A DNA stretch of 64,000 nt. Origin: Lama glama (Eukaryota). Positions 542-49,868 of the stretch are shown here, piece by piece. How positions within the stretch are numbered: the first letter of the stretch is position 1; the number at the start of each line of letters is the position of its first letter. The notes under the pieces were generated by a model. It did not search any database and was not told the DNA's origin. It worked only from the letters and a program-made list of their open reading frames with translations. Location of the stretch: NCBI GenBank assembly GCA_028534125.1, contig CM052817.1:248001-312000 (forward strand). Reading direction: 5' to 3'. Position numbers and translations under genes: made by a program.

Positions 542-658
542 CTTCTGCAGCCGGCGCGGGTGTGGGGACCGGAGCCTCGGCCCAGGCATCCCACCCTCCC
601 AGCAGGTCCGGGTGGGGGGCAGAGGCCGTCGTCCTGCTGGGCTCTGCTGGCAGATCCC
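542..658 (-). CDS. GAK: GAK exon 23 (117 nt) DLPAEPSRTT...DLLGGWDAWAE...AAE
   Basis: cttccag acceptor, G|GTACGA donor. Confidence 0.92.
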
Positions 659-2500: not shown

Positions 2501-2552
<52 letters not shown>

Positions 2553-11500: not shown

Positions 11501-14500
11501 GTCTTCTATGTTATTCTTGATGGCTGACTCTACACCCTCTGCCGGGAACGACATCACTGAAAGAGAGGAGCCCCATCAGCCACCGTGGCCGCCCCACAGC
11601 CTCACTAGCAACACAGCCGCTGACTCAGCGGCGCAGCGCTGACTGACTGGTGCAGCGAGTCCCGAGGAGGGTCGGAGCAGAGGTCCCAGCCCCGGCCGCA
11701 AGACGCAGGTTCTGCCGTAGAGCCTGCTACACCAGAGGGTCTCCAAGTGTTTGCATTTTGTTTTTTACCCAGAGACCCACGTTTTAACACGTGTGGCCTT
11801 GTATCTCTTTCCTCACGACCGCAGAGTTTCAGGAAGTTTCAGACCGGGGAAGAAGCTGGGTTGACCCTGGCACTGTCCACTACAGGGCCTGGAGGCACAC
11901 TGGCCACGGGGACGGACACCTCAGGCCACATTTCGGGGAAGTGAATGCCCACCCGAGAGGCACTTTCCCTCTCCACTGGCTGCACCCTGCCCGCCCTGCC
12001 TGACATGGCAGCACAGGATGGGCTGGAGGTCAGACACCAGAAGCCGCCCCAGGACAGGGAAGAATCAAAGTGTGTCCTTATGGTTAAAGTTGGCAAACGT
12101 ACCTGCAATTCTGGATGTAATGTAAGATATGTCCAAATCTCCCTTTGCGTAACTGGAATGAAAAAGAGCACGTGGTTATTGCAGAAAATCTCCACAGTTA
12201 ACTCACAAGAGCTTAGACTGAAGCAAGTCCTGGAGAGGCCGCGGGGGACCTTACCGTTCTGGTGGCAGCTCACAGGGAAAGCTGGGTGCGTGTGCATACG
12301 TGTCAGTGCGCATGCGTGCACCTGCGTGACCACACACACATGCACACACGGAGCCGACATCTATCTAAGAAGCAGACGAGCAATTATAAACTGCAGGTGG
12401 TGGAGAGGCACGGACCCCACAGAGGAGGTGCTGAGCTCTCACTGCTTTCCTGCTCTGAACAGCTGTGACACTAGGAGCTGGCTTGGGGGAGAGAGCAACG
12501 AAAACGGAAGATGTTGTTTTTTTGACCCAGTACCTCATGTCTGGCTCAGAAGATAATTATAAGGCAGACCGAATGGTGAAAAAACACGTGAAGGGAAAGA
12601 ACACGCGTCAGAAGCAGGCACGGCAGGGATGCTGGGTTATCAGACGGCGTTTAAAACAACTACGATTAACGTGCTGAGGCCCCAGTGGACACAGTGGACG
12701 GCACCCAGGACTTGCGGGAAGCGTGAGCAGAGGTGGACACCCTCTGAGAGAACCAAGAAGGAGGGCCGGCGGTGCAAACACAGAAACGAAGGCTCTGTTT
12801 GACAGGCTGAGTGGACTGGACACAGCCCAGGGGAGACTCTGAGCTAGAGGGCCTCTCGGTACAGACCCCGAAAACTGAAGAGCAAAGGGGCGGCGGGGCG
12901 ACCTCAGAAGGTGTCACAGGCACATGGCGGGAACTCCAGAAGAGAGAGAGAGAGGAANNNNNNNNNNNNNNNNNNNNNNNNNNNNNNNNNNNNNNNNNNN
13001 NNNNNNNNNNNNNNNNNNNNNNNNNNNNNNNNNNNNNNNNNNNNNNNNNNNNNNNNNNNNNNNNNNNNNNNNNNNNNNNNNNNNNNNNNNNNNNNNNNNN
13101 NNNNNNNNNNNNNNNNNNNNNNNNNNNNNNNNNNNNNNNNNNNNNNNNNNNNNNNNNNNNNNNNNNNNNNNNNNNNNNNNNNNNNNNNNNNNNNNNNNNN
13201 NNNNNNNNNNNNNNNNNNNNNNNNNNNNNNNNNNNNNNNNNNNNNNNNNNNNNNNNNNNNNNNNNNNNNNNNNNNNNNNNNNNNNNNNNNNNNNNNNNNN
13301 NNNNNNNNNNNNNNNNNNNNNNNNNNNNNNNNNNNNNNNNNNNNNNNNNNNNNNNNNNNNNNNNNNNNNNNNNNNNNNNNNNNNNNNNNNNNNNNNNNNN
13401 NNNNNNNNNNNNNNNNNNNNNNNNNNNNNNNNNNNNNNNNNNNNNNNNNNNNNNNNNCAGCAAAGCAGATGCGGAGTCTCTGGTTTCCCGGTGCGGCTGG
13501 AAGTCTTGTTCACACGACGCTGATCTGTTACAGCCTGCGGCAGCCTCGTATCCACCGAGCGGGGTCCACCCTTTGATCAGAATAGCTCTTTGCTGAAAAC
13601 CGCCCGCCTCCACCGAGCCTTCAGCAGGTCGCTGCCGTGACACCAGAGATCCCTGGCCACAGACGCCACGACCAGCACAGTGACGGTGACGAGGCTGAAT
13701 CAGGACGTGACACACAGACGGGATGTGAGCAGGCACGGCGAGCAGCCAGTCCTACGCGCGACATTTTAAACACCAATGGTCTAAACACGCCAATTAAAAC
13801 AGGAGGCCTTCAGGGGATCACGACCTTGCTCCAGCAGCGCGTCCACAAGGTCACGCGGGGCCAGGCTCTTGCAGCTTACTCACAGCTTGCCCTCAGTAAC
13901 CGCCTGGGCACGTTTGCCATGCATCTGAGCGTCCACATGCCGCTGTGTCTTACGGTGCTACTCCTTTGTGAGCCGTGCGGTTGGAACATGTTTACTCCCA
14001 ACCACTGCCACATCTCCTTGCTATTTTAAAGAAATGTGTTTTCCCAAAGAACAGAAAAATTTTATTTTGTGTCCGTTAAATTAATTAACCATTTCCTCCA
14101 TGCCTTATACATTTTTTGTCACATTTATTAAATCTTTCTTGTTCTGGTGTTATCAAGACGTCCCTTGTATTTTATCAGGTTTTCCTAAGAAACATCAATT
14201 CACAATTAGATCCCTTCACAAGTCAGAATCACTGTATTTGGCTGTTACTTTATAAGACCCGAGTTTTTATTTTCCACAGTGTCCATGGCTGCAGCACCGT
14301 CCACTCATCAGCCTGTCACTCCTTTCAGACTTACAGGCCCTGCTCGCAGCAGCCCGACCTGAGTATGCGCCACTTGTGAGTCTAACCACTGCACTTGTAA
14401 CAACACAACGGATGTTTGAGAAAAACTGACAGAGAATAGGATTTGTTCCCATTCTTATTTTTAAAAACATTGCTGGCAGCTTGGGGTAATTCATACATAA

Positions 14501-17500
14501 ATTTAAGATCAGAATCTGTGGGAACAACGTCAAGACTTTAATTTTTATTGCAATGAATATAGATTAACTGAGGAGTGACACCACCTTTCTTTTTTCCATT
14601 TTTTTTAGATCCCCCCCCCACCTTAACGGAGGCACTGGGACTGGACCCAGGACCTCGTGCACACCATGCAGGCCCTCTACCCCAGAGCTGTCACCCTCCC
14701 ACCCGATACCACCTTCAAATGTGAACGTGGTTGCACCTCTGCACTTGGTCTACCCTCACCGTCTTCATCAGTCTGCCGGGAGGGGCAGCATGGGGCGCCC
14801 TCCTGCACGACTGGCCTGAGCAGGGGAGTCAGGCCAGGGCCAGGGCACCCACGCAGGCCGGCTGCCACACACGCTGCCCTTCCTCCATCCTCCAAGTGCG
14901 GCCGGTGGGCATCACAGAGGGCAGGAATGGAGTCAGCACCAGAGAGACCAACTGTCCCCAAACTGACCATAAACAGACACGATGCAACACTCTCAATGGC
15001 CGCATAGGCAGCTCGAAAGCTTCGCTGCAGAGCTCGTCTGAAGACACAGAGGAGCCAGAGCACCTGGTGTGCTCAGGAAGGAAGGAGGGAAGGAGGCAGG
15101 CTAGCCTCCCAGACCAGAGAGCCATGGGGCTGGGGGGCTCACAGGACGAGGCCGGGCAGCGTCCTCTTGTCGGGGGAGAGGAAGCAAGAGGGAAGAAAAG
15201 TCCCCAAAGTGAGGTCCAGGCAGATCCAAGACTCGCACGTGCAACAGCAAAGCTACCAAAACAAATGCTTACGATGCAGTCAGACACGTGAAACAGACTT
15301 CGAATCACGACTGACACGTTCACAGCTCGGGGCACGAGAGGCCTTCCCACGCTGGAGAGCACAAGGCCAGCCTGTGCTTGACCGAAGCCCAGGACAGAAC
15401 AAGCAAGCGGAAGACAAGCAGCAGGCGAGGAGCAAGCGGCTGGCACGCTCACCCTCTGCAGAAGAGCTGGTCTGCGCAACCTAACACAGGAGCCAGCGAG
15501 GAAAAGAAAAGCCCAGCGTGGAAAGAGCGAAGGGCGAGAGCAGGCGAGAGCGGGCGGCCCGCAGGGCCTGCGAGGTGGGCTTGGTGCTGGGGGGCCAGGC
15601 ACTAGGCCCCGAGGAGGCAGCTGGAGCACCCGCACAGGTCGTGGGGGGGGCAACACCGAGCGTTCAGACACGGGCCAAGTTGGGAACTGGAGGTGCCTGG
15701 TGGAGGAGAAATGACCAAAGACCACAGATGGGGGCTCAGGGCCAGGCCCCAAGGGAGCCACAGCCACGCAGAGGCTACACAGGCTGGGCTGTGTGTGGGG
15801 GGAGAGCCTCCTCAGGCAGACCTCAGGACCCTTGGTCCACACGTCCGCAGCCGAGGGGCTGGCATGGCCCTGGAGGGTCCCTGTGACCAGTGACGGGCCT
15901 GAAGCCGCCCTGGGACTCCACATAGAGGACACCATCGGTGGGCATGGCTGCAGGGCTCGCCTGAGCCCCGGTGGGGAGGAGAACTTCCCTGTTGTTCCTT
16001 TGCTCTTGCTTGCAGTTTGGTAAACTAAAGACCTGGAGCTGCGTCCCCATATCCCGAGCCCGTCGGTGTCGGAATGTTTCCACCTGCCAGTATCTTCTTG
16101 AGGCCAGAGAACCCCACATCTGGTCTGGGTCCTGCCCTGTGAAGTGCTTTCAGGGAGGACCGGGTGTCCAGTCTACACCGCCCGGCCTGAGCATCGAGGG
16201 AAAGGGCAGGGACAGCCAGAGCCCAGGTGCCAGGGCTGTGGCCGGCCCCAGGCCTTCTCAGTGGAGAGAGCCAAAAAGGAGCAAACTCACACCATTATTT
16301 CTAGACCAACTTCACCAACCCAGGGGCTCACAGGACTTCTCTGATTGCTGGTACACGTCCTGGGCAGCAGGCAGTCACACAGAGCCTGACCTCGGGCCCT
16401 CAGGCCTGTCTGCAAGGCCTGGGGAGGGCTCCCCTTGGCCCAGTCATGTGACACAGTGTCCAGTGTGGTCACACGTGTGGCAAGCCAGTCCTTCTTGCAA
16501 GCAAGCACCAGGTGGGCACGTCCGTGGCAGCCCTGACAGGCCCTGGGGGCTGGGTCTGCAGGGGCTGCCCCGGGCCACGGTGCATCACACCTGTCATCAC
16601 AGCTCAGCTGGGAATTCAGTACGTCCGTCCGTCTGTCCATGATGCCATGCCTCTTCCTGAGCTGAGCGTGCCCTCTCTCTGAAAGGACTTGTGGCCCTGA
16701 GGATGGCTGTGCGCCAGGTCGGGTGTCCCGGGCGAACTGCAGGCCCGGGGGTAGTCTGGGACACAGCCATGTCCTCTCCTCTTCTCTCAGGAACCCCGTT
16801 CCCAACAAGGACCTGCCCTTGGGTGCGCGTGGTGCCCCGTCACTGTGTGGCCTGGTCCTGCCGCAGCCCGAGGTGCAATTGGGCTCATTGAGATGCTCAC
16901 GTGAGTCGCGTGGAGTGTGAAATCAGCTACAGCAGGCATGAGCGGCCACCACCCCCGCCCTCGTGAGTAGCCGTCCCAAGCAGTTACTCACCAGAACTGC
17001 TTTTCGGAACACACGGACATGCAGAACATCCGTGGACGTGCACACGGGGCGGTCACCACGGTTCTGGAACTCCAGCACCGCACAGACGCAGCCCCGGCAT
17101 GACGCTCCGCCCTGCTGGGCCCACTGCAGACACGGCGGGAAAGCACCTCGGCCTCGCGCTGACTCTCGTTTCTCTAGCCTCAGGCGGCAGACCAGACTCC
17201 CTCACAGCCCGTTTGTTGTCACTGGGGCCTGCCGTTCAGTCGGGTCCACCCCAAGAACCCACGGCACCCCACGCCCATCCCTGAGGGTGGGCGGCACTCA
17301 CACGCCAGGCAGCCAGGCATGGAGCCGTCATGCGAGGTCACCTGCTGTGAGAAGCACTGGCAGGTGACAGATGAGGCTGAGTGGTCACCTCTGCCCGTCC
17401 ACGCCCCGCCCGGGCCCTGCTGGCTTCCACCCCCAGAACTCGCGCCTCAGGCTGCACAATGGCTGCCGTCTCCGTAGCCAGCACTCCAGGGAGCCAGCCC

Positions 17501-20500
17501 CCACAGATGGATAAATGTTTCCTCTGCCCCTTCTGCCAGCCACGAGGCGAGGCCTGGGATGCCACCAAGGGCCATATGACGCAGCTGCCCTGCCCTGCTG
17601 GACACCCAGCCTGCAGCGGGAAGCAAGGTCCTTCTCGTCAGATAGACCGTGTAGGAGATAGAGCCTGTGAGAGCCACGGAGCCCACCAACTGCATGACAC
17701 ACACACACACGCACGCATGCCCGCACACCAGCCCTCACGTACAATACACACACACACACACGTACTCGCTCACGTGTGCACATCTGCCTTCGCCTGTGCT
17801 GCCAACAGCTATGGACACAAAGCAACCATGGCACAAAGGATGGACAAGGGAAATGCAGCCAACAGGTGCCTGTGGGCACTGCAGGACCGTGGGTCTCACA
17901 AACGCAGACAAAGTGCCACCCTGGACAAGGTAGGTGGCACTCCTGAGAGCTCCCTGGTTGAAGCTCAGCAGCACGGTCAGGCAGGCTGTGTGCTGTGGCC
18001 CCGGAGGAAGGGGCAGCGCAGACGTGAGGGGTGCCGAGGCCGGGGCCTCCCTCAAGGAGAGTGACACCGCCAGCGCCTGCACACCCGCTTGCCCACCACA
18101 CATCCTCCATGGCGGGGGCGGACACGGGGCCACCCCCACCAGCAGCATCAAGCCCAGCCCCAGGTCTGGGCCCGACAGCTGAGGCCACGCAGGCACTGAG
18201 CTCAGCACGCTCACCCGTGGCCGCAAGCATGGGTTCTCCCAACTTTGGAGACAGGGCTGTGCCCGGGGCTCGGAAATCTCACTGCAGAGACGCCACATGC
18301 CTGTACGCCCCTGACTCACTTGGCGACCGACTGGATGACCTTGGAGGAGGTGTCCTTGATGTTGGTGAAGAGGCGCTCGGTGCCCCCCCGCAGAATGTCC
18401 AGGAGCCCGCCGTAGGGTTGGTCGTACTCTGCCACTGCCAGGCCTGCAAGAGAGACAGGCTTTGGTGGGCGGGGCACGTCCAAAACCCATAGGCTGCACA
18501 TCCTGCCACCACCGCCAGCACTCCAGGAGAACTGTCCAGCGCCCGGCACCCCAGCAAGGGAAGAAACTGGCCGCCATCAGCGGGCTGGAGCCTCTTGGCA
18601 CACACAGCCCTCCGTCCCCATCTGCAGGATGTTCACTCAGCTCACTCCCAGAATCTGCTGGACACCAGCATGGACTCCGGCACTGACAGCCGCATGCCAC
18701 AGCCCAGGCAGGCAATCAGCTAGTCCCCAAGGTACGGGGACACCGGCAGACACAGAGGCCACAGATGATCAGGGAGAGAAGGGTGTGGGAGCGGGGATAT
18801 GTGGGTGGGTGGTCCCAGCCAGGCACAGAAAGGCCACGTGAGCTACAGCTCAGTCTGCAGGCAGGGGCCTCCTGGCCACAGTCCAGATGTGACCAGAGTG
18901 GTGACACCCAAAGGTGGGCCCCGAAATGTCAGGGTCCCCAGGGGTGTGGTCTGCAGAGGTAGTGATGGTGCTAAAAGTCAGCGTGAAGAGAGGAGGCAGG
19001 GCTACACGCATACCCGTGCCACGCGGTCATCTGTGGCCTCTTCAGGGCCTCTATGACCAGGCGGCAACAGTGGATGTCAGAGAACTGGGCGGAACCTGAC
19101 ACAAGGGGCCTTCGGGCTGTCAGTCAGCTCTGAGACATGGCTGATGAACCTTGTGTGTGTGTCCATGCTGGCCCTTCTCAAGGCAGTAACCAGTGGGCCC
19201 TGGCCGTGCTGGACCCACAACGCATGAACACAGAGCCAGGATATGGGGCCAGGACTCAGGCTGGCCACCTGCCAAGATGACCCTCCCTGGAAAGGAAGAG
19301 CGGCAGGAGGACACGGGGGCTGGACTCGCAGCCTGACAGCGAGGTGGCAACGGCCTGGGGGCACAGGGCAGAGAAGCGCGCCCTGGCACAGCTCTCAGAA
19401 CCTCTGGGCAGGACGGCAGCACGAAGCTCCAGCCCAGGCCCTCCCAGGACGTGCTATGTTACACTGGCCCTGGGCAACCAGACCTGCCCTGGCACACGCC
19501 ACACAATCAGTGCGCAAACTGCTCAGCTAAGGTGACATGCGTCATGAGGAAAGCCCACCAGCCCCACCTCCTCTCCCTGCCAGAGCCTGCACTTTCAGAC
19601 CAGCAGAACTGGCCCCTTGGCCCCTGATCTGACCACACGGTTTCCTGGCACCCCTTATGAGACCCCCAGCCTCGTGCTCGCAGCTGGCGAGCCCTGGAAG
19701 GTGGATCCTCACCTGCCTGGGCAGGGGCCACACTTTCCAGTGGCTCGTGGGAGCCGTTGGCCAAATCAGCCACAGGGGTAGGTGGCAGTGCCCATGGTCA
19801 CCCCAGACCTGCAAGTCATCTTGCAGGTCAGAGGGCTCAGAGGGCTCAGAGGACCAGGGCTGCCCCGACCACATGGGGAGGGGCAGCTGGTGCTCGGGCT
19901 CTGCCCTCCTTCCCCATCCTAAACCACGGCCTGAAGTTCTGGGGTGCGCGGGAGCCATGGATGTGGGGCTGGCCCTAAGGACCCTGAAGGTGCAGCCTCG
20001 CACCATCAGGCCACAAGGCTCAAGAGCAGGACCTGGGGCCTGCCAATCGCAGGCGCGTGGGGTGCTCACCTCCACTGTAGCTGCTGCTTGTGGGGCCCCC
20101 AGGAGGGGCCACGTTCCCATAGCCTCCACTCTGCTCCAGGAGCTGCAACGATCAAACACCAGTCAGGGCACAGTGCACACCGCTTCTCGCTGCGGAGAAT
20201 CCTCAGACGCCAGCACAGGGCGCCATGCACTTCGGGCACGCGGCCCACATCAACCCTTCTCTCTCCACCTGGTTTAAGACAAAATCATGAAGGAACCTCC
20301 CACAGGTTGGACAACAGGGCTGACACCTGGGACCAATCAGGCGCACGTTCCCGACATAGGCTGTCTCTGCTGTCAACAATGCCGCGTGGGGCCCGGTGGT
20401 CTGCACCCCAGGCCTGGCCGCAAGCAGGAACGCGGGAGACACAGCCCAAGGCAGGCGCTGGCGGCAGCCATGACATGAAAACCTTCTTTGGAGCCCCGGG

Positions 20501-23500
20501 TGTCAGCAGCAGTCTGGAAGCCGGGCTGTAGCCCCCACCCAGCCCACTGGAGTGTCAGCCGCAAACTCACTCTGTCGTAAGCAGGCCACAGTTCCCGAGG
20601 CTACAATTTTTATCAGATATTCGGAAATCACTTTACGGTTTCCCGTAGGATTTTACGAAATGTTCTCATCGGGTTTATGTTTTATCACGTTAAGCTCAAA
20701 AAGTGAGATGTATGTGTTACTGATTCTGTGGAGTATGATGAAATGCTGTCTTTCCTTGTGACCAGCAGGCAGACGTTAATGCTAACGCCCCCTGGGCTCT
20801 TAAAGAGAACAGGTTCGCCTGCGGGAGACACGTGTCTACCAGATCGACCGTCTCATTTCACACCAACTCCCACTTCCGTCTAGCTGTTTCATCAGCTCCT
20901 CAAAGGCACACACCTTCTCCCCGCACTGCGCCCCAGCCCCTCGTCCCGCCCTCTCCCTCCCACACACTCTTCATCCCCATGCCTCAGCCTTCTCCATGCT
21001 CCCACCCTTGGGCGCTGCCCACTACAGGCGCTTAATTTCTGCGCCGCAGGTCCCAGACCCTGGGGGTGCTCAGAGCAGGATACACTCAGGAGCCTGCTGA
21101 CCAGCGGCCTGCATCCAGCTATCGGCACCTCCGCCCGCTGCACACAGCAACCCCGAGCACATGTGCCGGCTGACCGCCCCAACTGCGTCCCCCGCACCAC
21201 CACCTGACCCTCTGCTGAGCCCTGGGAGCACACACCCTCTGTAAGATGCCACGGGAGCCCCAGGCCCACCCCCATGGTGCTCACTGCCCTCCTAGACCCG
21301 AGTCCCACCTGAGCCATGCCCACTTCGCCCCCTCCTCCTCACGTGACAGCTGCTGCCTGACGCGCCAGGACTGTCTCCACGTCCTGCCCTGGCCCTGCAC
21401 CGGTGCCCACGGGGCGCAGAAACGCCCTGCGCCCCGGGAGCCCCACCCCCGCTTTACTCCCGACTCCGGGGACCCCGTCCTCGGGGCTCCTGCCTGCCTG
21501 ATGGCTGCGAGCCCCTCGAGGGCTGGGTCACCCAACGCTAGGGCAGCATGAAGACTGTGCAACCACCAGCAACACAGAGGGCCTACCTCAGTGATGGGTG
21601 CCTTGGGGTTCACGTTCCGGGCAGCCGCGATCTCCTGGAGCTGGTTCACCAGCTCGCTGATGGACAGACGCTCCTCGGGGTTGACCTTGAGGGTGGCGCC
21701 TGTGGCAGAGACAGCGCATGCTTGTCCCCAGGCCACTGGAGCCGGGGTCCCGAGTGGGCGAGCAGCATGGCTGGCTTTGCAGGGGCTATGGACCCCCGAG
21801 GCCCTGAGCTTTGCTTTCGTTACCGGTTTTACAAGCAAGCAGGTGTGATGGAACAAAATCACCAAAACCAACCACTCGGGGCTGAGCAGGGCAGCTGCCT
21901 GGACCTGCCAGGAGGCGTGCCCTGCAGGCCCTGCACACGACTTACGGATGAGGTCATGGAACACGGAGTAGCGTGTATCGCCGGCAGGGATGGAGTACTT
22001 CCCGTTGACTATGCGGAGCTTCGCTCCATCCTCGAAGGGGTGCTGCCGGAAGCACAGCAGGTACAGGATGCAGCCCAGGGCCTGCAGGGAACAGGGCGAG
22101 GGGCGGTCACAGCCAGGCCCCCTGGCATGACCAAGGCTCCCCCTCGTCTGGCCGCGTCCACCCACGCCAGCCACTGCTCATCAAGGTCAGAGCAGTCAAC
22201 AAACACCGAACTCTTGTTTTCTGATAAAAAAATCCTTTCGAAACGGAAAGCTCCCACGGTCATGTGTGGGGATCTGCGGGCCGGGCAACCACGAGGAGAT
22301 GCCCGGCCGCGCTCCTCAGTGTTAAGAAGATGCACAGGGCACACCCAGGGCAGGTTGGGGCTCCGCAGAACTGGCCCTGAACCCAGACGTGTCTTCTCCC
22401 GGCTTCTCCTATCCCAGCACCTGGCCACGGGGGATGCTGGAGGCACCGGAGCCCACCCTGCATCTCAGGCTGAGCAGCACATGCTGGGCCCAGACAGGCC
22501 AAGCCCGAAGTGCACGGTTCCAGGTCCACCTTTCACTGCCGTGTGTGCGCGTGTGCCCTCACCAGGGGCAGGCTGACGGCGTCCACTTGGAGCCAACCAG
22601 CTCACATCTTAGTCTCCATCTACTCCCAGGACGGGGACTCTCACGTTCACGGTGGGGCTGGCACTGGACATGGCCCCGTCGGGCCTAGACCATGAGCCCC
22701 GAGGTGCGGGGATTCAGGGTCACCTGTCCCTGCTCTTAGGGACACTGGGGAGGCTGCAAGACCCCCAGACGGGGAGGGGAAGCACTGTGTGCTCAGCACT
22801 GTGCTCCCCAAGCTCTGTGCTCTGACGCTGAACAGAGGCGGAGCAGACATCACACTCACCCCACGTTGGCATTGCTGGGACATGTCCCAGGAGAGGGGCA
22901 GGGAAAGGTTGCCCCAGCGTCCGGCCCAGCCTCTCTGAGATCTCTTCCCAAGGCATTGGGCTTAGCCCTCGCTTTGGCTACGCCCAGGTCAGCTTAAGCT
23001 GCAAGGCCGCTTGGGACGTCTGGCATCTGGCCCTGTGGCCAGTGGCTTTGTGACCCTCCAGCCCCCTGAGAGGCTCCAACCAGGAGAGCAGACATTCTTG
23101 GGCCAGGACTTCTGCCCACACTGCCTCGCGCTGACCCCCAACCCAGCTCCTAGCCAGCTAGGCTCCGCCAACAGCAGTCACAAGTGCCACTAAAAAAGAC
23201 TAAGGAAAAGGAGGAGGAAAAGAAAGGAGGAAGCCAAGGGGACAGCAGATGGAGGCTGCACCCCAGGGCCTCACACCAGCCCTCCCCCGCGCAGGGCTGC
23301 CCCGGCTCCGCGGGCGAGCAGCCTCACCCAGACGTCCTGTTTCTCGCCGATCGGGAAGTTGGAGTACAAGTCCACAATCTCCGGTGTCCGGTACATGGGG
23401 GTCGTGTTCCTGGTGATCTGAAGGGAGGACACAGACACGTCAAAGGGAAAGCCACGTGCAAGCAACACCAGTTACGCAGCACCGCGGTCCCGCGCCAGTC

Positions 23501-26500
23501 CGGAGACCAGGCCCAGGGTGGCACGGTGAGCCAGGCGTGCAAGCCGGCTCGGCGCCTGTGAAGGCAGCGGTGTCCTTGAAGGAGCTTCCCAACAAGCCCC
23601 TCTCGACAGAGAAACCCCTGACGGAAACGCACGGAAGCCAAACCCGCCTGCTGCTGCAGGGCTTCCATGGAATGCCCGCCACCCACGCCTGCAGGACGCC
23701 CAGCCACGACCAAGCGCGCCTGACAGACGGCAGACACACTGGCCCAGGCAGAGGAAGGGGACAGGCCCGGGCGAGCAGGGGCCACTGCTCCCCACGGCAA
23801 CATGCGCTTTGCAAGAGAAAGCACGCGGGATGCCAGCCCCTCGCCGACACGTGCCTGCATGGACAGAGGTGTACAAGAGCCCAGAGCAGCCCACCACAAC
23901 CGGCCCCCGCTGGGCAGGGCAGGCTCCCGTGAGCACCAGGAGCACGCGGGCGACACACCTACACTGAGCAGCCGTACGTATGGCCCGAACCTTTCAACCC
24001 AGCGATCACGCTTCCAGGATCGCGCCCTGAACACACGTCCTGACACGCAGGAAACTGTCCTCTGCAGCGGTGATGCTGCACACAGCCGACGTCCCAGACG
24101 GTGCCACACGGAGACGCGTGCACACGAAGGGACAAAGACGGTCCCACTCAACTCAGCACTGACTCAGAAGAGAGAAAGCAGACAGAAGGCACAAGAGCGG
24201 ACACATCTGCCTGCTCCTCAGGAGAAGGAAACTCGGAAGGTGAAGCAGGACGCAGCGAGGGCGACTGGGGGACATGGGCAGGGGATGCGGGCCAGGCTCT
24301 GCCTGCATATCAGTTCTTCGGGGAACCCGAAACCGCTCGCAAGATAGAGTCTGTTAACTTGAAAATAAGATGAAAGATACAAGATAAATAAACCCAGATG
24401 TGTTTCGGTCGAGCAGCCTAACAGACCCACCCTGGGTCTGGGCCGCACACGAGGCCGTGAAAAGAACCACAGGCAAACCCTGAGCTCTTCTGAGAGGTTT
24501 GGTTTTCCTAGCGACCCTGGAGCTCCCAGCTCCAGCACAGGCTGCAGCGGGGCCAGGCTCCCGCTGGGACGGACATGCACGCAGGGTGGGGCGGGGGGTC
24601 AGGCATGTGTGTTCCTGAGGGCAGGGGATCTCCGCGCCATTCACGCACAGGCCCTGCCCCCACACAGAGGGCAGCGCTCCTGCAGGATCAGGGACGACGA
24701 GGTGGGCCAGGTAGGTGCATCCTGCCGCTGCAGAAAAGAGGTAAACACTCCAAAGCGACGATGTCAAGGAATACAGGAACCAGCACGAAGCACACCCACA
24801 CATTTCAGCACCAAAATAACCACTGAGCCGCAGAGGCCCGAGCAACGAAGAACCATATCCACCAGGCCCCGCGAACAACAGGCAAGGCGCAGGGTTCCGG
24901 TCCCTGGGCACGGCAGGCGTGGAGCAGCCGTGGTGGTCACGCAGCCGCAGAGCAAGACACTACACCTTGGCCTCGAGGTCAGAGTGACCAGTCCCTGATA
25001 CGCGGTGCACTCGATGGTGGGGGTCTGTTCAGGGCACACGACTCAGAGCCCCGCGAGGTGATCACAAAACCAGGTCTTCCTGGGCCCCAGCCCGGCCCCA
25101 GCATGCCCGGCCAAGGCCTCCTTTCACCCCCATCCCTGCCAGCCAACCTGAGGAGAACGCGGTTTGCAGCACTGAGACGTGGGCACTTTGCTGGGACCGA
25201 CTTTCCTATAAATGCTTCCGACAGGGCAGGTCCCGAGGGACAGACAGACAGAGCAAGCACAGGCTCGCACCCCAGCCTCCGGGAACAGGGCACCGCCTAT
25301 AGCAGAATCACTCGTCTCCGCACTCCTTTTCGGAACATGTCTTCCCCGGGACCCCTGCCCTCTCCGCTCATTGCTGTTTTTCTGTCTCACATGGTTTTGA
25401 TTGTGCAGTTCCTGCGGCCGTTTACCGAAGTCCAAGTTAGCAGCAGGAGGGTGCAGTGGCGAGTGTGTGGACAGCGCCCACCCTCCCGGACGATCCCGAC
25501 ACCAGGGTGTGTCTGCTCCCACTCAGTGCTGCTTTCCACGCACATGTGCTCCGAGCACACCCTCCAAACCTCCTTTGGGGTCACCTGTGGGAGCTGCCAA
25601 ATCTCCTTGAAGTTATATTTTTTAATGATTTATTTTAAACGAAAGTTCTGGAGACGGATGGTGGGACAGTTGCACAAGGATGTGAACGTACTTAACGCCA
25701 GTGAACTGCAAGCTTAAAAATGGTTAAGACAGTAAATTTTATGTTATGTGCTTTACTACAACAAAAAAAGGTGCACAAAAAAAAAAAAAAGCAATAGGAC
25801 ACTCAGAGGCAAGTCTGGGATGAGAACAGTGATGGCGACACAGGGTTTGGTGTCCCGGTAGCCCGCCAGCCCGGCCAGCCCAGCAACCCTGCTCACCTCC
25901 TCCTCCACGAGGGCCCGCCGCTGGGCGCTCCAGCTGTAGTCGGGGTAGTGGGATATGGTCGTGGCACTGCCAAAGTCACACAGCTTAATGGTCCCCTGGT
26001 TACTGAGTAGTAAGTTTTCAACCTGCAAAATTCCAGAAGACAGTCTTCGTGAGCTTGGGGAGCAAGCTGGACGGTGGAAAAACACCCAGGGCTCCAGCAC
26101 AGGGCAGGGTGCCCCGAGGGGAGGGGCTCAGAGGGTAGAGTAGCCGGCGTTTTCCTGGGCAAACAGGAAACCTCTCTGATCAAAACTGGTATATGTACCT
26201 TTAAAATGAGGACTTCAGAAAAATAAAAGCTAAAACCAACCACAAATCAAAGAAAGATAAACTAATAAGGTGGTATCTACAATGAAAGCCTTCATAAACC
26301 TCAGAAGGCGAAAAAAACACCACTTGAAATCATCAAGTGCACCCATAACAGGAAGGTATCCAACAACAGACACACAGAAGACCCCCTGTTCAGAAATGAG
26401 CTGTGATGAATTTAAAAATCCAAAATGAAGAGGGAGCGAGACTGTATTCCTAAGAGGAAAGACACAAGCCCGCCCCAACGCCCTGGAAGCCAGCCCAGCA

Positions 26501-29500: not shown

Positions 29501-32500
29501 GTCTCTGTGGATGATGGGTGGCTTCTGCTTGTGCATGTGCTGCACCGCTCTGCATGTCTGATAAAATATCTTCAGAACAGTATCGCACGAGAGCGGACCT
29601 TTAGACTCAACTTTCTTTAAAAATTCCACCAGCTGCCCTACAAGAGACAATCACCAGGGAGCTGTGAGTGCTCCGCCCGCCTCGGGCATGCGCCCGCCAG
29701 CCGCACCCTCCTGAGCCCGCTGGGGGGTGTGCAGCCCCCACCAGGGCGCGGGCCAGCGCTGGGGCGCCCTGTGCGAACGCCTGCCTACCATCGGCACGCC
29801 CCTCCCTGCAGAGTCCACGCAACGTGGCAGCTACGTGGGAAAGGATGACAAACATGCCCAACTCTCCAAGTACCTCTAGGGAACAATCACTGCATCCTCT
29901 GCTAACTCTTAAATCAATGTAGCACCTCCGTCATCACATCCTCCACGTGCACACAGATGCGGAACGGAGCGTGCAGGGAGAGCACGACCAGACAGCGAGG
30001 CTCTGGGCACCAGGACGCTGTTCTCAGGGGCTCCCCACCTCAAGGCTGTGCCTCCCCATCTCTGTAGCCCAGGAACCCCGAGGCCTGCTGTAACCGGCCA
30101 CAGCCCAGACCTTGAAGCCGGGCACCTCAGGTATAGGGTGGCCGGCCCCCTCCATGACTATGCATGGTCCCAGCCTCCACAGGCTCCCACCACCCCCGGG
30201 CCCCGGACCCCCAACCCTGTTCTTGCCCTGGACGTCTCAAAGCATCTTCCTAGAGTCCAGCCTCTCCCCAGCCCCACGCTGCCCTCACCCTGGTCCAGGG
30301 CCCAGGCCACCTCGGCTCCCTTGCTCCCAAGGCCCACTTCACACACTAAGGGCCCGTGCCCGTCCTGCTCGATGCAGAGCCAGGGTCACCACACCTAAGG
30401 GCCCACGATCGGCACTCACTCGTTCTCTCCAACCTCACCTCCCATCATCCCCTGTGCTCATTCCCCTCGAGCCACAAGCCTCCTTTCTGTCCGTGCCTCA
30501 GGACCCTCACACCTGCAGCTCCTGGGCTCCCGAAGCTCCTGACCCGACCGTCGCCCTCCAGGGAGCCCTCTGCTCAGCCTGGCTGATGTGCACCCCTTTC
30601 CCCAACATGTGGAGCTGCCCGCCCTCCAACTCTGGACTTGGGTTGGGCTCTGTGCTGTGCCCTAGCCCTAATCCTCAGCGGGGCGGGGGCCCCAGGGGGA
30701 CAGGGGTCCTAAGAGTAGGTGGGGCCCCCAGGATGCGGATGGAGCACAGGCCTCATGAGGTGTTGTTGAGGGTCTGGAGCAAGGGTGACAGACTAACTGC
30801 CAGGCTGGCTGGGGACGTGATGCGCTGGTGCAGGGCGGGGCACCGCAACATCAGGGTTCACTGGCCTGACGTTCAACCAGAGTTAAGAGAGCTCTTTTTA
30901 AATTAATTCCATCAGTGGCAGAGCAGCCAGAGAGAGCACTGTGGAGGGCGAAGCCTTGGGGAATCAGGAGGGTGAAGGCTCCACGGAGCATACCCACGGT
31001 CGACTTCCAAAGACCTGCCGCCTGTCAGGCACTACCACACCTGCTCTGCGAGCACCCTGAGGGTTCAGCCTGGGCCTCGCGCACCAGCCCAGGCAGGCGG
31101 TCCTGCCCACGCCACACGCAGTGGTGGGCTTCACGAGATCGCAGCATCAAGGATGCCCCTGACACACGTGGGCAACCAGGCCCCCCTCCTGGCGCCTCCT
31201 GCACCCCAGGCCTGCACGCACCTGCAGAAGGGCAGCCACAGCCTCTAAAACCGAACATCAAAGCCAAAGCATCCTGGATGGTGAACGGGGAACACAGCAC
31301 ACGAACCAGAGACACAAACAGCCGAAAACACAAAGACACACGTCCACTGCCAGCAGCAGAGCACGAGGCAGACGGGGACCCAGTGGGCAGGGCCTCCAAG
31401 GGGAACATGCTGCCCAACCACAGGAACGGGGGCAGCTCAGGGACCTCCCAGTGTGGGTCCTGCTGCACTGCAGACAGGGCCCAGCCCTGAGGGCCGAGGC
31501 AGCTGCCTAGCTCCCACAGGCCCAGCTCCCAGCCTTGCCTGACTATTTCCTGCTGCCCCAGAGCGCACGAGGATGCCAGCGCTCACCCTTCCTCCCAGCG
31601 CCAGCTCTGCTCTCGCCCCCAGGGCGGGGACCCAGGGGAACTCTCCCCCCAGGGCTGGGACAGGCCATGGGCAGGGTGGGGGTGCAAGAGCTCCCGCCAG
31701 GCAGCTAGCCACGCTCTTCCACTAGGACCAGTGGGTCTCAGGAGCGAAGGCCCCGGGCGCACCCTGCTGTCAGGGCTCAGACCTGCTGGAACCTGACCTT
31801 TGCAGAGCTCCATGAGCAGCAGGAACTCGGCCTGCCCCGTGTCCGACTCCTCTTTTCCTATTGATGCTGCAGAACAAAACTGGACGATATTGGGGTGACC
31901 TGAAAGTTTTTTCTGTGGGGATCTTGTTAAAGGAGAAGGTATAAGCCTGCATGTTTGAGAACAAACATGTACACAATTCTAAAGTCAAAACACCGAATCC
32001 AAAGAGTGCACCATGGCAGGGTGTCAGAGCAGAAAGATGCAAGGGGGTGGGGGCAGCCAGGATGCAGGGGGTGTGAGCAGGAGAAGGACAGGCTAGGGTG
32101 AAGACCCCAGTGGGCTGGCCACACCCAGCCCCAGCCAAGCAAGGCAGCAGCACAGGGCGCGGCAGGGCTGAGGTGTGACGGGACACGCAGCCACTCAAGC
32201 CCAGCGAGGTGAGCACCCTCAGCCCAAGCGGCTGGCAGGCTCGCAGTGGACAGTGCTTCAGGACGGAAGAGAACTGATTCTGACAGCAAAGGGCAAAGCC
32301 CCAGTTTGGGGAGAATGTGTGCAGGAGTGGGGAGCAAGCAAGACGGGCCCTCTGTGCACGGACACCCAGGCCCCAAGCGCTCCAGCCAGGGTGAGACGTG
32401 AGACAGACCCCAGCCCTGAGCAGAATCAATATGGAGCCAGGCCTGGTGAGGGGCTGGGGGCACAGCCACTTGCCGGGTGCCGTGGGCCACATCAGGGAAC

Positions 32501-35500
32501 GAGGGGCAGACATAGGGCAGAGGCACGGGTCGGCCCACCCCCAGGGCCTGTAGACCTCTTGTCAGGGACACCCACCTCCACTCCCAAAGCTACAGACCCT
32601 CCCTGTTTATCACCCTGAGGGTGAAGAACAAGAAGAAAAGTCCCTTGTGCGAGACACGCCACAGGGAAGCCCAGTGAAAGCACATCGAGAAGGGTGCCGT
32701 CAGGAGCCGGGCGCGGGCCCCGCCACGCGACCAGGTCTGCGCTCAGTCCCCAGAAAGGATACCATGAAACAAACTTCCTGAATGATGGCTCTGTTCTTCT
32801 CCTCTTCGTCAGACAGTAATCTCTGTATCGGGAAAGAACACACGAGAGAAAATGAAAGATTTGCTCTTTCCATGCTGCATCCAAGAGAACAAACACAACG
32901 CATCTAAGAGCTCACCCTGCCTAACTCACGTAGAAACGTGACAGAGTTTAAAGACCCTCGGAAATGGTCACGATCCAAGGATGCAAGAAAAACTAAAAAC
33001 AGGAGGGTTTTCTTCAAACAGGCTAGAGGGAAGGGAGGGGAGACATGGGTCTGGCTCTGGACCGCACAGTCCAAGTACGCCCCCAGCTCAGCTGTGCACC
33101 AAGACCAGCCCTCGGCGAGTCTCAAGACAAACCAGCCTGTGCGCCCAGCACCCGACATGGGCCGGATGACCCCGCCGCCCATTTACAGGTACACTGTGAC
33201 ACGTTGTTGCACATGAGTGGCTTTCAAACTCCTGGCATCTGTGGAGCCCTTATTTTGGCAGTATCAACACTGTGAGGTCACCCTCCACCCTCCACTGGGT
33301 CCCCGCCCCAAAGCTGGAAGCCACAGCTTTAAAGTCCTCAGACCTGCTGATGGCTTCACACTGAAATAACAAATAAGACAAACAGACACAGACTGTAAGA
33401 AAGAAACATAAAATAAAGAAGGAACAAACCTCTGAAAATGTCACTTAGCGATTTCCTTTAAAACGAACTAAAACCCCATAAAAATGCTGTCACCCTTTTT
33501 ACCTTCAGTGCATACTCTCTGCCACTTCCCAGATCCTGAGCTTCATATACAAATGCAAACCCTCCTGAAAGTTAGAAAAATACATGTGTCAGTTCAGTGC
33601 TGTGATTTTACTCAAAAATGAGCTTCAAAAATGTCTTTACTAAGTAAAATACAGGCTGGGCTTGTGGCCGCAGTTTGTTTTCTGCAACAGTAATAGCCCC
33701 AATTGGTGTAATATTGCCCTTTAAACATCTTGCTTTGAGGCAGGAAGGAAATGAACATAAGAACGAGATTAATGAGGGAAAAATCAACAAAACCAAAAGC
33801 AGTTCTCCAAAAACAAATCAATGACCAATATCACACATGCACATGGACGGAAGAATCCTTAAAGCGTTAATTCTAAATAAAATTCAGCGTTGGCAAATCA
33901 AAGCCAACAGCACACAGAAACGCACAAAACATCACAACTTGGTGGAGTTAGTTTAACAGCGAAAATCAGTGTAATTCTGTTGATTCCATTTGCTTCGCTT
34001 TTCCTAGCTCCCTATAGTGGGGAATGACATCATGAAACCCACAACTCTCAGCAAAGGCGGGAGAGAAGGTGAAGGGCAGCTCTGAGAGACGCACAGGGAC
34101 CCCACGCTCGGCGGTGGAGACCAGAGGCCTCCCTCTAAGATCAGGGCCAAGGCAAACGCTCAGCACCTTACTGGAAGTCCTGGCCAGTACAATCAGGCAA
34201 GAAAAGAAACAGAAGGAACCAGATTGAAAAGGAAGAAGAAAAAAGTTCTTTTTGCAGGCAACGTGATTGTCTACGTAGACAACCTTGTACCCACCCCCCA
34301 AAAGTAGTAAATGAGTTCAGGAAGGTTGAGGGATGGCAGTCACACGTGAAAAGTCAACTTTATTTCTACAGACCCTAGGTCAGGCAAACACTTCTTAGAT
34401 ATGAAAACAAAAATATGATCCATAAATGAAAAATATGATAAATGGACTTCTTCAAAGTGAAGAACTTCTGGTTTTTGAACTATACCATTGAGAGGGTGAA
34501 AAGATAAGCCCCTGGGTGTGGACTTTGCCAATCACACACCCAGTAATGGTCTTCTACCCACAAAATGTGAAGAAAGCTCAGTTCAACAACATTTTAATGG
34601 GCAAAATACATGAAAAGACACGTGGCCAAGATAAACAGCTGGCACACAGGCACGTGACAAAGCGCTCCATGTCCCTGCGCGTTGCGGGAAGGCACACTTA
34701 CACCACAAGGGCCTGCTGCTCACCCCTCGTGCCGTGCACCCTGCTGACCCTGCTCAGGGGACACCGAATGGCACGATCAGTTTGGAAAACAGTCTGGCCT
34801 TCTTGACAAGTTAAGCACACAGCCCCTCCACAGCCCAGTCATCACTGCCAGGTATTTCCCGGGGAAGAATGGAAGCACACACCCACACAAAGACCTGTAC
34901 ACGAGCGTTCACAGCAGCCTTGTGCGGAACTGCCCAAGCTGGAAACAACCCACCGTACGCCAGCAATGAGGCAGGAGCCAGCTGCCCCTACAGGGAGCAC
35001 ACTCACCCCCAGGTCAGACGGGTACCGCCAGCACATGGCACGGGACGCAAAGACAGCTGCTGGAAAGAAAGGGCCAGGAAGAAGTACACGTGCCCACACA
35101 GAAAGCCCCAGAACACACACACGATGTGCGGCGACAGAGGCTGGCCCGCAGCAGGCCAGGGGCCCACGGTGGGGGGGGAGGTGGGGCTGACGGCGGTGGG
35201 AGGGGGGTACTGCGCAGGCTCCAGATGGCTCCCACCCTGATCACAGCGGTGGCTCCGCTGATGCGCACTCGGCTGCACATGTTCAAAGTGTTCTGACACG
35301 TATGTGCCAAGTTCCTGTATGTCATTTTTATCTCAAGACAGACATGAGAAAATTTAAGTAATAAAAAAATCCACATGAAAAACAGATGAAAGGAAATAGA
35401 TGAAAATCCATAAAATAGATAGTAGAAATAGGAAACAGATGGCTTCGCTGGTGAGTTCTATCAAGCACTGAAGCGAAGAAAGCACAACGATCTTTGCACA

Positions 35501-41500: not shown

Positions 41501-43447
41501 TACAACACTTCCCCAAGTCCCGGGGCAGTATCCCAGGACACACAGGAACGCACTGTTTTTCTAAGTTCTGAAGAACTCTGACACACAGGTAGGTACCCAA
41601 GGGTTTTGGGTTTGGGCCCTTGCTCATGCTTATACAAGCACCTTGAATTCCCAGTCTACGAGCTTTGGAGGCTGTGAACCACCGGTGAAGTTTAAGAGGA
41701 GGAAGTCCACAGCTCACAGCCGCACTGTGACTGTGGCTCCTGACCTGCCTAGACAGCCAGGGGAGCGCACTCTGTGGCACAACCACAGCAGCTGCCCCGT
41801 TTCCTTGTTCTTCATTCTAGGTGTTAAGCCACGGGCATGAGCTTCCTTCTTTCCATGACCCGCTTCCCCTCCCACTCTCCTACCCCTGGCCTGCCCCTGC
41901 ACCTGGCAGGGGTTCATTCTCACCCCTTGCACCTCAGCTGGGCCCCTGCAGTGAGCTGTCTTTTTAGAGCATGTGTCTTACTTTAGGTTCCACAAGGCAG
42001 AAACCATGTACTCTCCACTATAAACTTTCGGAAGAAACAAAATACTTGCCTGCTGTCTTCAGAATAAATGAACTGATCTGGGGAAACTCTCGCTCTAGCA
42101 GATATGCCAAAATATCACACTTCATAATGTTACTAGAGATACGGCCCCACCACACCCCCATTCCCAAAAGAGCCTAAAATTTCTTCACCAAATCAACCCA
42201 AATCTCTTTGCTTCTGACCCTGGAGAAAAAGTGTGTGATGATGCTAAGGCCAGAGTAGTGCCTCAGGCCTTCAGGAGACGGGCATCAAAATGGTCAGCTG
42301 GTTGAGCTCAAATGGCAGCAGGGGTGCCCGCCGTTGACAGGGTGAGCCTACAGGTCTGAGAGCCACCAGAGACAGGCTTGGTGGTTCACTCTACCGCTCC
42401 CCCGCCCCATCCTAACACAGGGGATATAGTTCTGTTTCAGCACCAGCCCCAAAGCCGTCTGTATTTAGCTGGCGAGCGCTACAGCTAGCGGAATCCAACA
42501 TACCCTTGTACGCGCCACTGGACAACAAAGAAAAACCCAGAGGAGAAAACAGGACCGCGGCAACACTGGTGATAAATTCTAGTGCGAGGAAGGGAAGGGA
42601 GAGGGCGTTCAGGAAGCTAGAAACAGCAGCAGAAACACAGCCGACTAAAGCTCTACCCGGAAATTCCTCCCCGACGGACCAGCCCAACCTGCAATGTTCG
42701 GTACAGATAACAGCTGTTAGCTCAGCTCTCCGTAAGTTCCATGGACTCACAGACAGACGTTCGAGGCAAGGGGAACGCTCGGATGGTAAGACGGGAAAGC
42801 CTGGTTAAAGGACACTGCGCCGTCTGTCCAACGCTCCAGGAGAGCGGAACTGCAATCACCCACGCCCAAGTTCCCGGCACCTGAGGAGAGCCAGCCCTAC
42901 CTCTGTCCAGAGGTCCAGTCGCGTCCCACTCCCCTACTACTGCCCTAGATGCGAGGGAAGGGCCGTGGCTTATACCCACCCAGCCCCACTGCCCGCCCCC
43001 AGACTCCAGCCTGCAGCCCTGCAGCACCCTTCCGCCCCGCCACCGCCTGCACTGTGGCCCCGCACTCACGCTCCCCGCCTGCCCAACGTCCTTCCCACCG
43101 CCACAGCCCCTCCCCCAGGCGCGGTCGGCCCCACGCCTGCTGCTTCCACTCCCCTGCCCCAGCCTGACCCCAGGCCTCCGACAAGGAAGTGCCCAGCCCG
43201 ACACCGGCCTCACCCTCAGCAGCCACCTCCCGGCCGGCCGTGACCCTCGGCCCCGCGGCGACCCTCCCCGCGACCGGCTCGCGCCCCCGGCCCCGGCCTC
43301 ACCCTCGGCCAGGACGCGCCGCACCCGCAGCCGCAGCTCGCCCATCTCCACCGTCTGCCCCACGAAGTCAGTCTGGTCGCGGCCGGCAGCGCCACCCAGG
43401 GAGCCCGGGCCCGCCAGGAAGTCGAGCGCAGACTGCAGCAGCGACAT
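542..43447 (-). CDS. GAK: Cyclin G-associated kinase (auxilin-2), spliced CDS exons 1-23, 3082 coding nt in window; the 3' exons with the J domain lie left of the window
   Basis: Hand-spliced exons give a continuous frame: MSLLQSALDF N-terminus, NAK kinase domain (LAEGGFAFVYEA, ALK, HRDLK, DFG), PTEN-like domain (VVHCMDGRAAS), C2 domain and clathrin/adaptor-binding low-complexity region. All introns are GT-AG. Confidence 0.98.
1034..1054. repeat. (CA)10 microsatellite, GAK intron 22
   Basis: read directly. Confidence 0.95.
1259..1432 (-). CDS. GAK: GAK exon 22 (174 nt) DPFDPLL...DLFGEFLNSDS...DFLHL
   Basis: ccacag acceptor, G|GTAAGT donor. Confidence 0.94.
1666..2082 (-). CDS. GAK: GAK exon 21 (417 nt) EDKDCVMSPE...DLLGLHSE...DLLSCLLG...GPGPA
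   Basis: cttttcag acceptor, G|GTAGGT donor; frame-preserving; DLL clathrin-type motifs. Confidence 0.9.
2187..2330 (-). CDS. GAK: GAK exon 20 (144 nt) KPELPRQPGS...FLHTLDWR
   Basis: ctgcag acceptor, G|GTAGGC donor. Confidence 0.94.
2502..2550. repeat. (CA)24 perfect microsatellite, GAK intron 19; reads (UG)24 in GAK pre-mRNA
   Basis: read directly. Confidence 0.97.
2991..3184 (-). CDS. GAK: GAK exon 19 (194 nt) YDLDACDIQEKYP...QDILSKF
   Basis: ctgcag acceptor, G|GTAAGA donor. Confidence 0.97.
5120..5780 (-). mobile_element. Degenerate L1 fragment (GAK intron 18)
   Basis: gttcacggagctttgggctctgtg...atgtctttcatcagtt resembles antisense L1M sequence. Confidence 0.45.
6266..6345 (-). CDS. GAK: GAK exon 18 (80 nt) MASMKMFQIQFHTGFVPRNATTVKFA
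   Basis: ccgcag acceptor, AA|GTATGT donor. Confidence 0.97.
6581..6698 (-). CDS. GAK: GAK exon 17 (118 nt) DFKIEDGKAVIPLG...GRLQAK
   Basis: ttttctccag acceptor, AAG|GTGAGT donor. Confidence 0.97.
6966..7160 (-). CDS. GAK: GAK exon 16 (195 nt) YIEYMCDMV...SQEYDRM
   Basis: gcag acceptor, AG|GTGGGC donor; start of C2 domain. Confidence 0.97.
8106..8128. repeat. (GACCCC)~4 short tandem repeat
   Basis: read directly. Confidence 0.8.
8290..8640 (-). mobile_element. Degenerate L1 fragment (GAK intron 15)
   Basis: gggggaaattctcagcgactgtttc resembles antisense L1M sequence. Confidence 0.4.
9878..10011 (-). CDS. GAK: GAK exon 15 (134 nt) DGRAASAVAVCSF...GIWPSHK
   Basis: cctag acceptor, AG|GTATGG donor. 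Confidence 0.97.
10777..10899 (-). CDS. GAK: GAK exon 14 (123 nt) VSECGWAARR...VCVVHCM
   Basis: ctgcag acceptor, ATG|GTGAGC donor. Confidence 0.97.
11408..11556 (-). CDS. GAK: GAK exon 13 (149 nt) VMSFPAEGVESAIKNN...PSKFHSR
   Basis: ctttcag acceptor, CGG|GTGAGC donor. Confidence 0.96.
12103..12152 (-). CDS. GAK: GAK exon 12 (50 nt) YAKGDLDISYITSRIA
   Basis: tttcattccag acceptor, G|GTACGT donor; start of PTEN-like domain. Confidence 0.96.
12958..13457. other. Assembly gap, exactly 500 N, in GAK intron 11
   Basis: counted from the sequence; left flank ends in a GA run. Confidence 0.99.
14586..14700 (-). mobile_element. tRNA-derived SINE, camelid Vic-1-like
   Basis: Reverse complement reads gggagggtgacagctctggggtagag...gcacgaggtcctgggtccagtcccagtgcctcc plus A-rich tail; ACCACCTT-like target-site duplication on both sides. 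Confidence 0.7.
18320..18443 (-). CDS. GAK: GAK exon 11 (124 nt) LAVAEYDQPYGGLLDILRGGTERLFTNIKDTSSKVIQSVA
   Basis: ttgcag acceptor, AA|GTGAGT donor. Confidence 0.96.
20070..20142 (-). CDS. GAK: GAK exon 10 (73 nt) LLEQSGGYGNVAPPGGPTSSSYSG
   Basis: ttgcag acceptor, G|GTGAGC donor; phase fits exons 9 and 11. Confidence 0.92.
21587..21699 (-). CDS. GAK: GAK exon 9 (113 nt) ATLKVNPEERL...KAPITE
   Basis: cacag acceptor, GAG|GTAGGC donor. Confidence 0.96.
21946..22081 (-). CDS. GAK: GAK exon 8 (136 nt) ALGCILYLLCF...VFHDLI
   Basis: ctgcag acceptor, C|GTAAGT donor. Confidence 0.97.
23328..23417 (-). CDS. GAK: GAK exon 7 (90 nt) ITRNTTPMYRTPEIVDLYSNFPIGEKQDVW
   Basis: cag acceptor, TGG|GTGAGG donor. 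Confidence 0.97.
25630..25790 (+). mobile_element. L1M 3' end with A tail, about 100 nt into GAK intron 6
   Basis: gttctggagacggatggtgg...ttaaaaatggttaa...aattttatgttatgtg is a typical L1MB/MC 3' terminus. Confidence 0.65.
25897..26022 (-). CDS. GAK: GAK exon 6 (126 nt) VENLLLSNQGTIKLCDFG...VEEE
   Basis: ttttgcag acceptor, GAG|GTGAGC donor; DFG motif. Confidence 0.97.
26600..27100 (+). mobile_element. Degenerate L1 ORF2 fragment
   Basis: gagctgacaaactgatccaaaattta motif. Confidence 0.45.
28186..28220. repeat. (AC)11 plus degenerate tail, GAK intron 5
   Basis: read directly. Confidence 0.9.
28580..28621. repeat. Three perfect tandem copies of AACCCGGGGAGGGC (14 bp)
   Basis: read directly. 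Confidence 0.95.
28830..29180 (+). mobile_element. Degenerate L1 fragment
   Basis: gggagaagatatttgcaacac...cttcattaatcaggaaaaggcaaatc. Confidence 0.55.
29495..29637 (-). CDS. GAK: GAK exon 5 (143 nt) GQLVEFLKK...IIHRDLK
   Basis: tag acceptor, AAG|GTACGG donor; HRD motif; seen in ORF track 29429..29650. Confidence 0.97.
31798..31912 (-). CDS. GAK: GAK exon 4 (115 nt) KKLSGHPNIV...EFLLLMELCK
   Basis: cacag acceptor, G|GTCAGG donor; contains gatekeeper and hinge. Confidence 0.97.
32763..32822 (-). CDS. GAK: GAK exon 3 (60 nt) RLLSDEEEKNRAIIQEVCFM
   Basis: cag acceptor, ATG|GTATCC donor; alphaC helix. Confidence 0.96.
33503..33564 (-). CDS. GAK: GAK exon 2 (62 nt) GFAFVYEAQDLGSGREYALK
   Basis: tttcag acceptor, AAG|GTAAAA donor; G-loop and catalytic Lys. 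Confidence 0.97.
33700..39150 (+). mobile_element. Cluster of fragmented old L1 (ORF2 and 3' UTR) pieces in GAK intron 1, with interspersed L2 and LTR remnants
   Basis: aaaatcaacaaaaccaaaagc, aatcaggcaagaaaagaaa, ggaaacttcttcaatctga, tcaatggaacaacggag and gctggaaacaaccc are L1-like motifs. Boundaries approximate. Confidence 0.7.
37572..37908 (+). mobile_element. MLT1-type MaLR solo LTR nested in L1
   Basis: atgttgaagccc...ggaggtgattaagttaactgag...ccctgccggcacctgacctcagactccaagcctccaggac...gcagcctgagcagatgaaga matches the recalled MLT1 layout. Confidence 0.75.
43303..43447 (-). CDS. GAK: GAK exon 1 CDS (145 nt) MSLLQSALDF...RVLAEG
   Basis: ATG in GCCGCCATG context; donor G|GTGAG. Confidence 0.97.
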
Positions 43448-45500: not shown

Positions 45501-45513
45501 CAGATCTTTTTCT

Positions 45514-45590
45514 GGGGTGGGTAGAGTGCGTGCTTAGCATGCATGAGGACATGGATTCAATCCCCACTACCTCCATAAAAAAATCAAAAA
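45514..45590 (+). mobile_element. Vic-1-like SINE with the A box deleted
   Basis: ggggtgggtagagtgcgtgcttagcatgcatgagg...attcaatccccactacctcc plus A tail. Confidence 0.7.
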
Positions 45591-49835: not shown

Positions 49836-49868
49836 TGCTCAGACCTGTGCTTCCTCCCAGGCCCCACC

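Follow-up and report, generated by a model that had tools for sequence, protein, structure and literature searches.

A natural methionine at the Thr123 gatekeeper position of a mammalian GAK orthologue

The GAK locus and its neighbourhood

The window, by which we mean the whole analysed stretch of 64,000 nucleotides, carries a GAK gene on its minus strand (Table 1). A tblastn search with the Sarcophilus and Pongo GAK proteins gave colinear exons for residues 1 to ~1000, down to the window start. The last ~300 residues, which include the J domain with its HPD motif, fall beyond that start. The same search, with the marsupial and orang-utan proteins as queries, placed exon 4 in the window in a single copy. 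Exons 1–4 were rebuilt, and all have canonical AG/GT splice sites. Single GAK exons gave Pkinase matches in Pfam. The exon at 6965–7159, in the PTEN-like/C2 region after the kinase domain, matched PTEN_C2 (PF10409) with 33 bits, above the cut-off. The motifs of the N-terminal kinase domain are all present (G-loop, Lys69, HRD, and DFG). With the exon structure also intact, this upholds the view taken in a sequence-only reading of the locus that the gene has not become a pseudogene.

Coding exons of a TMEM175-like gene lie on the plus strand from ~49.9 kb (49800–53480), head-to-head with GAK and ~6 kb from its exon 1. The pieces recovered are MSRPQSPEP... at ~49.87 kb, ...DKSIQKLLATRIAVYLMTFLIVTVAWAAHTR at ~51.9–52.05 kb, and ...RLFQVVGKIDDT at ~53.45 kb. 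One of these exons gave a Pfam TMEM175 match that stays below the cut-off because the query exon is a fragment. TMEM175 is also the head-to-head neighbour of human GAK. Apart from the substitution described below, the gene in the window is an intact orthologue of GAK, and its genomic surroundings are the usual ones.

A stretch of 500 N occupies 12958–13457, within the intron of GAK that separates the exon at ~18.3 kb from the one at ~12.1 kb. Two blocks, 12001–14000 and 44001–50000, have a GC content of 0.42–0.49, compared to ~0.6 elsewhere. The stretch of N falls in the first of them, and the second separates GAK exon 1 from the coding exons of TMEM175. Both blocks may be repeat insertions.

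Table 1. Positions of the GAK features in the window.
Feature	Position	Strand	Evidence
Exon 1, coding part, 145 nt, ATG at 43447	43303..43447	-	
Exon 2, 62 nt, G-loop GGFAFVY and catalytic Lys69 (YALK)	33503..33564	-	
Exon 3, 60 nt, alphaC region RLLSDEEEKNRAIIQEVCFM including Glu85	32763..32822	-	
Exon 4, 115 nt, Lys90–Lys127 and first base of codon 128	31798..31912	-	acceptor cag/AAAAAA, donor AAAG/gtcagg
Codon 123, ATG (Met), gatekeeper	31811..31813	-	Thr in human GAK (PDB alignment); same codon in contigs of four runs
Exon 5, full codons only, QLVEFLKK...HRDLK, catalytic loop	29495..29635	-	Pkinase match
Exon with DFG motif (VENLLLSNQGTIKLCDFGSA...)	25897..26022	-	
Other exons: kinase C-lobe, PTEN-like/C2, clathrin-binding region, to ~residue 1000	582..23417	-	tblastn

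The gatekeeper codon and its state in independent runs

Exon 4 encodes beta4, beta5, the gatekeeper, and the hinge residue Cys126. On the minus strand it contains GAG TTC CTG CTG CTC ATG GAG CTC TGC AAA, which translates to EFLLLMELCK. The ATG is read from 31813 to 31811 and appears as CAT on the plus strand. Exons 1–3 contribute 145 + 62 + 60 = 267 nt, or 89 codons, and Lys90 opens exon 4. The ATG is thus codon 123, three residues N-terminal to Cys126, and the count made in the sequence-only reading proved correct on the rebuilt exons. Against the human GAK chains in the PDB (4o38, 4c57, and 5y7z), 32 of 33 exon 4 residues are identical (E ~5e-16). The sole mismatch is the human Thr, which is Met123 here. 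That this residue is the GAK gatekeeper, as stated in the sequence-only reading, agrees with papers that name Thr123 in the human and mouse proteins (PMC6312924 among them). The presence of Met123 in place of Thr at the GAK gatekeeper is confirmed as a real observation. The gene is known, and the variant is a natural change of one residue at a site that matters for pharmacology. Having Met at codon 123, the protein does not belong to the small-gatekeeper (Thr/Val) class, whose members accept back-pocket inhibitors.

A literature search found no paper on T123M together with GAK, on natural gatekeeper variation in GAK, or on GAK in connection with camelid positive selection. A metagenome scan for a 27-nt string carrying the Met allele gave 0 matches.

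We examined the codon in independent sequencing runs. In runs of four organisms (A–D) from six studies, 0.90–0.98 of the words sampled from a 1.3-kb stretch around exon 4 were found. Contigs were compared for runs X11 (organism A), X9 (B), X12 (C), and X14 (D), which come from three studies and were not flagged as possible sources of the assembly. Each run gave one contig spanning exon 4, at a depth of ~9.5 to 28.7. None of the four contigs differs from the window at 31811–31813, although assembled contigs drop minority alleles and a Thr allele at low frequency would escape detection. The runs show one to three differences each in the compared stretch, all intronic (31342, 31772, 32182, 32301, and 32316), and the organisms are ~0.1–0.2% apart there. 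Another 18 small runs, which belong to organisms E and G and come from seven studies, also contained all nine sampled exon 4 words. The estimated chance that at least one of the nine words spans codon 123 is ~80%, so that for E and G this is supporting evidence only.

As the four runs do not differ at the codon, Met123 is not a consensus error and is common to several very closely related taxa. The earlier concern that it might be a rare allele or an error at 31812 is answered by the contigs, which show no other letter there and give Met as the state in all four organisms. That the true codon is ACG or ACA, and that Met reflects an error in sequencing or assembly or a variant private to one individual, is largely refuted and very improbable: the difference from human is one base at a CpG and the best-matching runs may be the assembly's own source, but unflagged runs from three studies carry the same codon, the five intron differences nearby show that variants are visible to the method, and the runs of two further organisms contain every exon word sampled.

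Some features of the compared introns were recorded separately. At 31772, A>G is seen in three of the four runs (A, B, and C), and the window has the minority state. At 32301, C>T is shared by the two runs from one study. Positions 32443–32474 (32 nt, intron 3) are also matched in all four runs by a second, unrelated contig whose flanks differ on both sides, and this stretch is probably a short dispersed GC-rich repeat.

Thr and Met at the gatekeeper of GAK and related kinases

Thr is the gatekeeper in 219 of the 223 full-length GAK proteins fetched (~98%), from amphibians to primates. The proteins with Thr span amphibians, sauropsids, marsupials, a monotreme, afrotherians, and primates. A toad-derived query drew amphibians and sauropsids, a full-length marsupial query ranked sauropsids above most placentals, and an exon-plus-intron ORF query returned 30 fragments. 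None of the three yielded a named GAK from the likely order of the window mammal or from orders next to it. The primate, elephant, and sirenian sequence clusters contain those groups only. Mammals with Thr include the Tasmanian devil, koala, wallaby, wombat, platypus, dugong, manatees, elephants, aardvark, elephant shrew, golden mole, and many primates including human. Thr is also seen in GAK fragments of marmot, ground squirrel, and jerboa, and in six further mammalian lineages from public assemblies. Met is not widespread among the mammalian GAK sequences sampled; a wide occurrence in mammals is what the sequence-only reading had named as counting against it.

The four exceptions are Ser in the frog Gastrophryne carolinensis (P0084) and Met in three invertebrate proteins, those of the starfish Asterias rubens and A. 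amurensis (P0019/P0261) and of the freshwater mussel Potamilus streckersoni (P0031). The latter are full-length and GAK-like, and Met stands where the alignment places the gatekeeper. They share just 78–88% identity in exon 4 and are phylogenetically remote, so that Met probably has a separate origin in them and in the window mammal.

Met123 is not unique among mammals either. A second, distantly related mammalian lineage (L001–L009) has ATG at codon 123, together with AGA at codon 127 (Arg127, K127R). Both are identical in 9/9 contigs fetched, which come from several run series (for example, SRR35083195, SRR31744757, SRR34641834, and SRR32210694), and the index of the collection has the lineage in 67 blocks. 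Its occurrence in so many runs suggests that this is probably a heavily resequenced species. The Thr codon is ACG in six of the ten Thr-bearing mammalian loci fetched, and ACC, ACA, or ACT in the remainder. The frequency of ACG among Thr-bearers supports the route proposed earlier, an ACG>ATG transition at a CpG.

The rest of the protein resembles human and mouse GAK (PDB IDs: 4o38, 4c57, 4y8d, and 5y7z) in its exon structure, G-loop, Lys69, HRD, and PTEN-like C2 region, and in the head-to-head TMEM175 neighbour. Glu85, Val99, Phe101, Leu121, the hinge residues Leu125 and Cys126, Cys190, and DFG are the residues of human GAK. Compared to ten other mammals, six kinase-region residues are specific to the window (L35M, T123M, I246V, T286S, S326A, and F374L). 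Only T123M touches the ATP pocket; the other five lie off it.

BMP2K (BIKE) has Met aligned to the GAK Thr in a PDB search (...LILMEYC... against ...LLLTELC...). A preprint contrasts AAK1 Met126 and BIKE Met130 with GAK Thr123, and describes an aromatic hinge residue, AAK1 Phe128 or BIKE Tyr132, where GAK has Leu125 (bioRxiv 10.1101/2020.03.06.976563). These sources bear out the Met gatekeeper that the sequence-only reading gave for the related NAK kinases. The description of the window protein as AAK1-like holds for the gatekeeper and fails for the hinge, which is of the GAK type (M-E-L-C, with Leu125 and Cys126 kept) and has Leu125 in place of Tyr or Phe. The remaining sequence is GAK, with the PTEN-like region.

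EGFR T790M is the same Thr-to-Met swap at the same structural position, and 4-anilinoquinazolines bind both wild-type pockets. EGFR T790M is also an ACG>ATG transition. It differs in being somatic or a rare germline change, selected by therapy, in a tyrosine kinase. In several taxa compared here, by contrast, Met123 was the sole state, and GAK is a Ser/Thr kinase that was never exposed to such drugs.

Proposed explanation and its consequences

We consider the best explanation as a whole to be a genuine change of Thr123 to Met, of CpG origin, in a competent kinase that binds back-pocket inhibitors more weakly, and give it a probability of about 0.75. The most likely source of Met123 is an ancestral ACG codon whose CpG underwent a C-to-T transition. 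Catalysis would be expected to persist, because Met is the natural gatekeeper in BMP2K, AAK1, and the invertebrate GAKs, and because the other pocket and catalytic residues are those of human GAK. Other Thr-to-Met and Thr-to-Ile gatekeeper changes stabilise the regulatory spine or raise ATP affinity. By analogy, Met123 may do either in GAK.

The small Thr123 matters for known inhibitors. Thr123 is within a water-mediated network that holds gefitinib (PMC6129943). The dry back pocket of SGC-GAK-1 has been attributed to the small Thr123, and Met occupies the same space in AAK1 (bioRxiv 10.1101/2020.03.06.976563). Published back-pocket designs favor kinases with a Thr or Val gatekeeper, GAK among them, and obtain their selectivity through the small gatekeeper. 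The bulkier, hydrophobic Met should occupy the small back pocket beside Lys69, and it should abolish the part of the Thr123 hydroxyl in the network with gefitinib. With the pocket filled and the hydroxyl lost, Met123 GAK should bind back-pocket inhibitors less well, namely gefitinib, erlotinib, and 4-anilinoquinolines such as SGC-GAK-1. The size of any resistance is uncertain, as kinases with a Met gatekeeper can still bind some such drugs.

Met123 could instead be real and fixed but effectively neutral in physiological terms, with an effect only on man-made inhibitors. We regard this as a serious possibility, at somewhat less than an even chance. Met is functional as a gatekeeper in BMP2K and AAK1 and also in the GAK of starfish and mussel, no mutation is more common than the CpG transition, the identical change exists in a second mammalian lineage, and no accompanying pocket changes were seen. 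Against neutrality, all but four of the 223 full-length GAKs retain Thr although many use the mutable ACG codon, which argues for purifying selection on Thr. Moreover, the smaller gatekeepers of the analog-sensitive mutants T123A and T123G strongly cut the activity of GAK (PMC6312924), and the site is therefore not indifferent.

A single origin of Met123, at the base of a larger group of mammals that takes in both the window's species and L001–L009 and for which Met would be ordinary, is a more tentative proposal. By alignable intron, L001–L009 is the best match to the window, with ~2.5 kb at 77% compared to 0.7–1.8 kb for others. A tree of the 700-bp flanks pairs the two, with weak support (68/58). 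Shared-derived sites, anchored on a reference, number 21 for this pairing, and 15 and 9 for the alternatives; the three counts cover every way of pairing among the window, L001–L009, and the next-closest lineage, which bears Thr. These counts are not decisive, however, and the whole-locus alignment splits the window from L001–L009, with one clade rejected by the AU test (p=0.0005). A Thr-bearing lineage, L012/L016 (codon ACC), is almost as close to the window. The branches are very long, the alignments noisy, and the GC-rich introns hard to align.

It is unlikely, in our estimate, that two independent switches from Thr to Met by the same CpG transition reflect recurrent adaptive retuning of GAK rather than drift. 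If true, the retuning could consist, for example, of a stabilised regulatory spine or a higher ATP affinity that affects clathrin uncoating or virus entry, and the two switches would supply natural GAK alleles with inhibitor resistance, ready for use as controls in chemical genetics.

The preferred reading, a genuine Met123 in a competent kinase with weakened inhibitor binding, matters for pharmacology. EGFR inhibitors frequently hit GAK as an off-target, and antiviral compounds are aimed at it as a host factor. Much of the selectivity of GAK inhibitors over related kinases is ascribed to the small size of the Thr123 gatekeeper, and a natural Met123 orthologue lets that view be tested with M123 and T123 proteins. 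The same orthologue offers a natural model on which to build a control allele that resists inhibitors. As a sequence change, Met123 is still a curiosity of one residue in a gene that is well known. For this animal group it advises caution, as GAK-directed and EGFR-type drugs may act differently there. For the evolution of the family, it is a rare documented gatekeeper switch in an almost invariant orthologue, one that possibly occurred twice in mammals.
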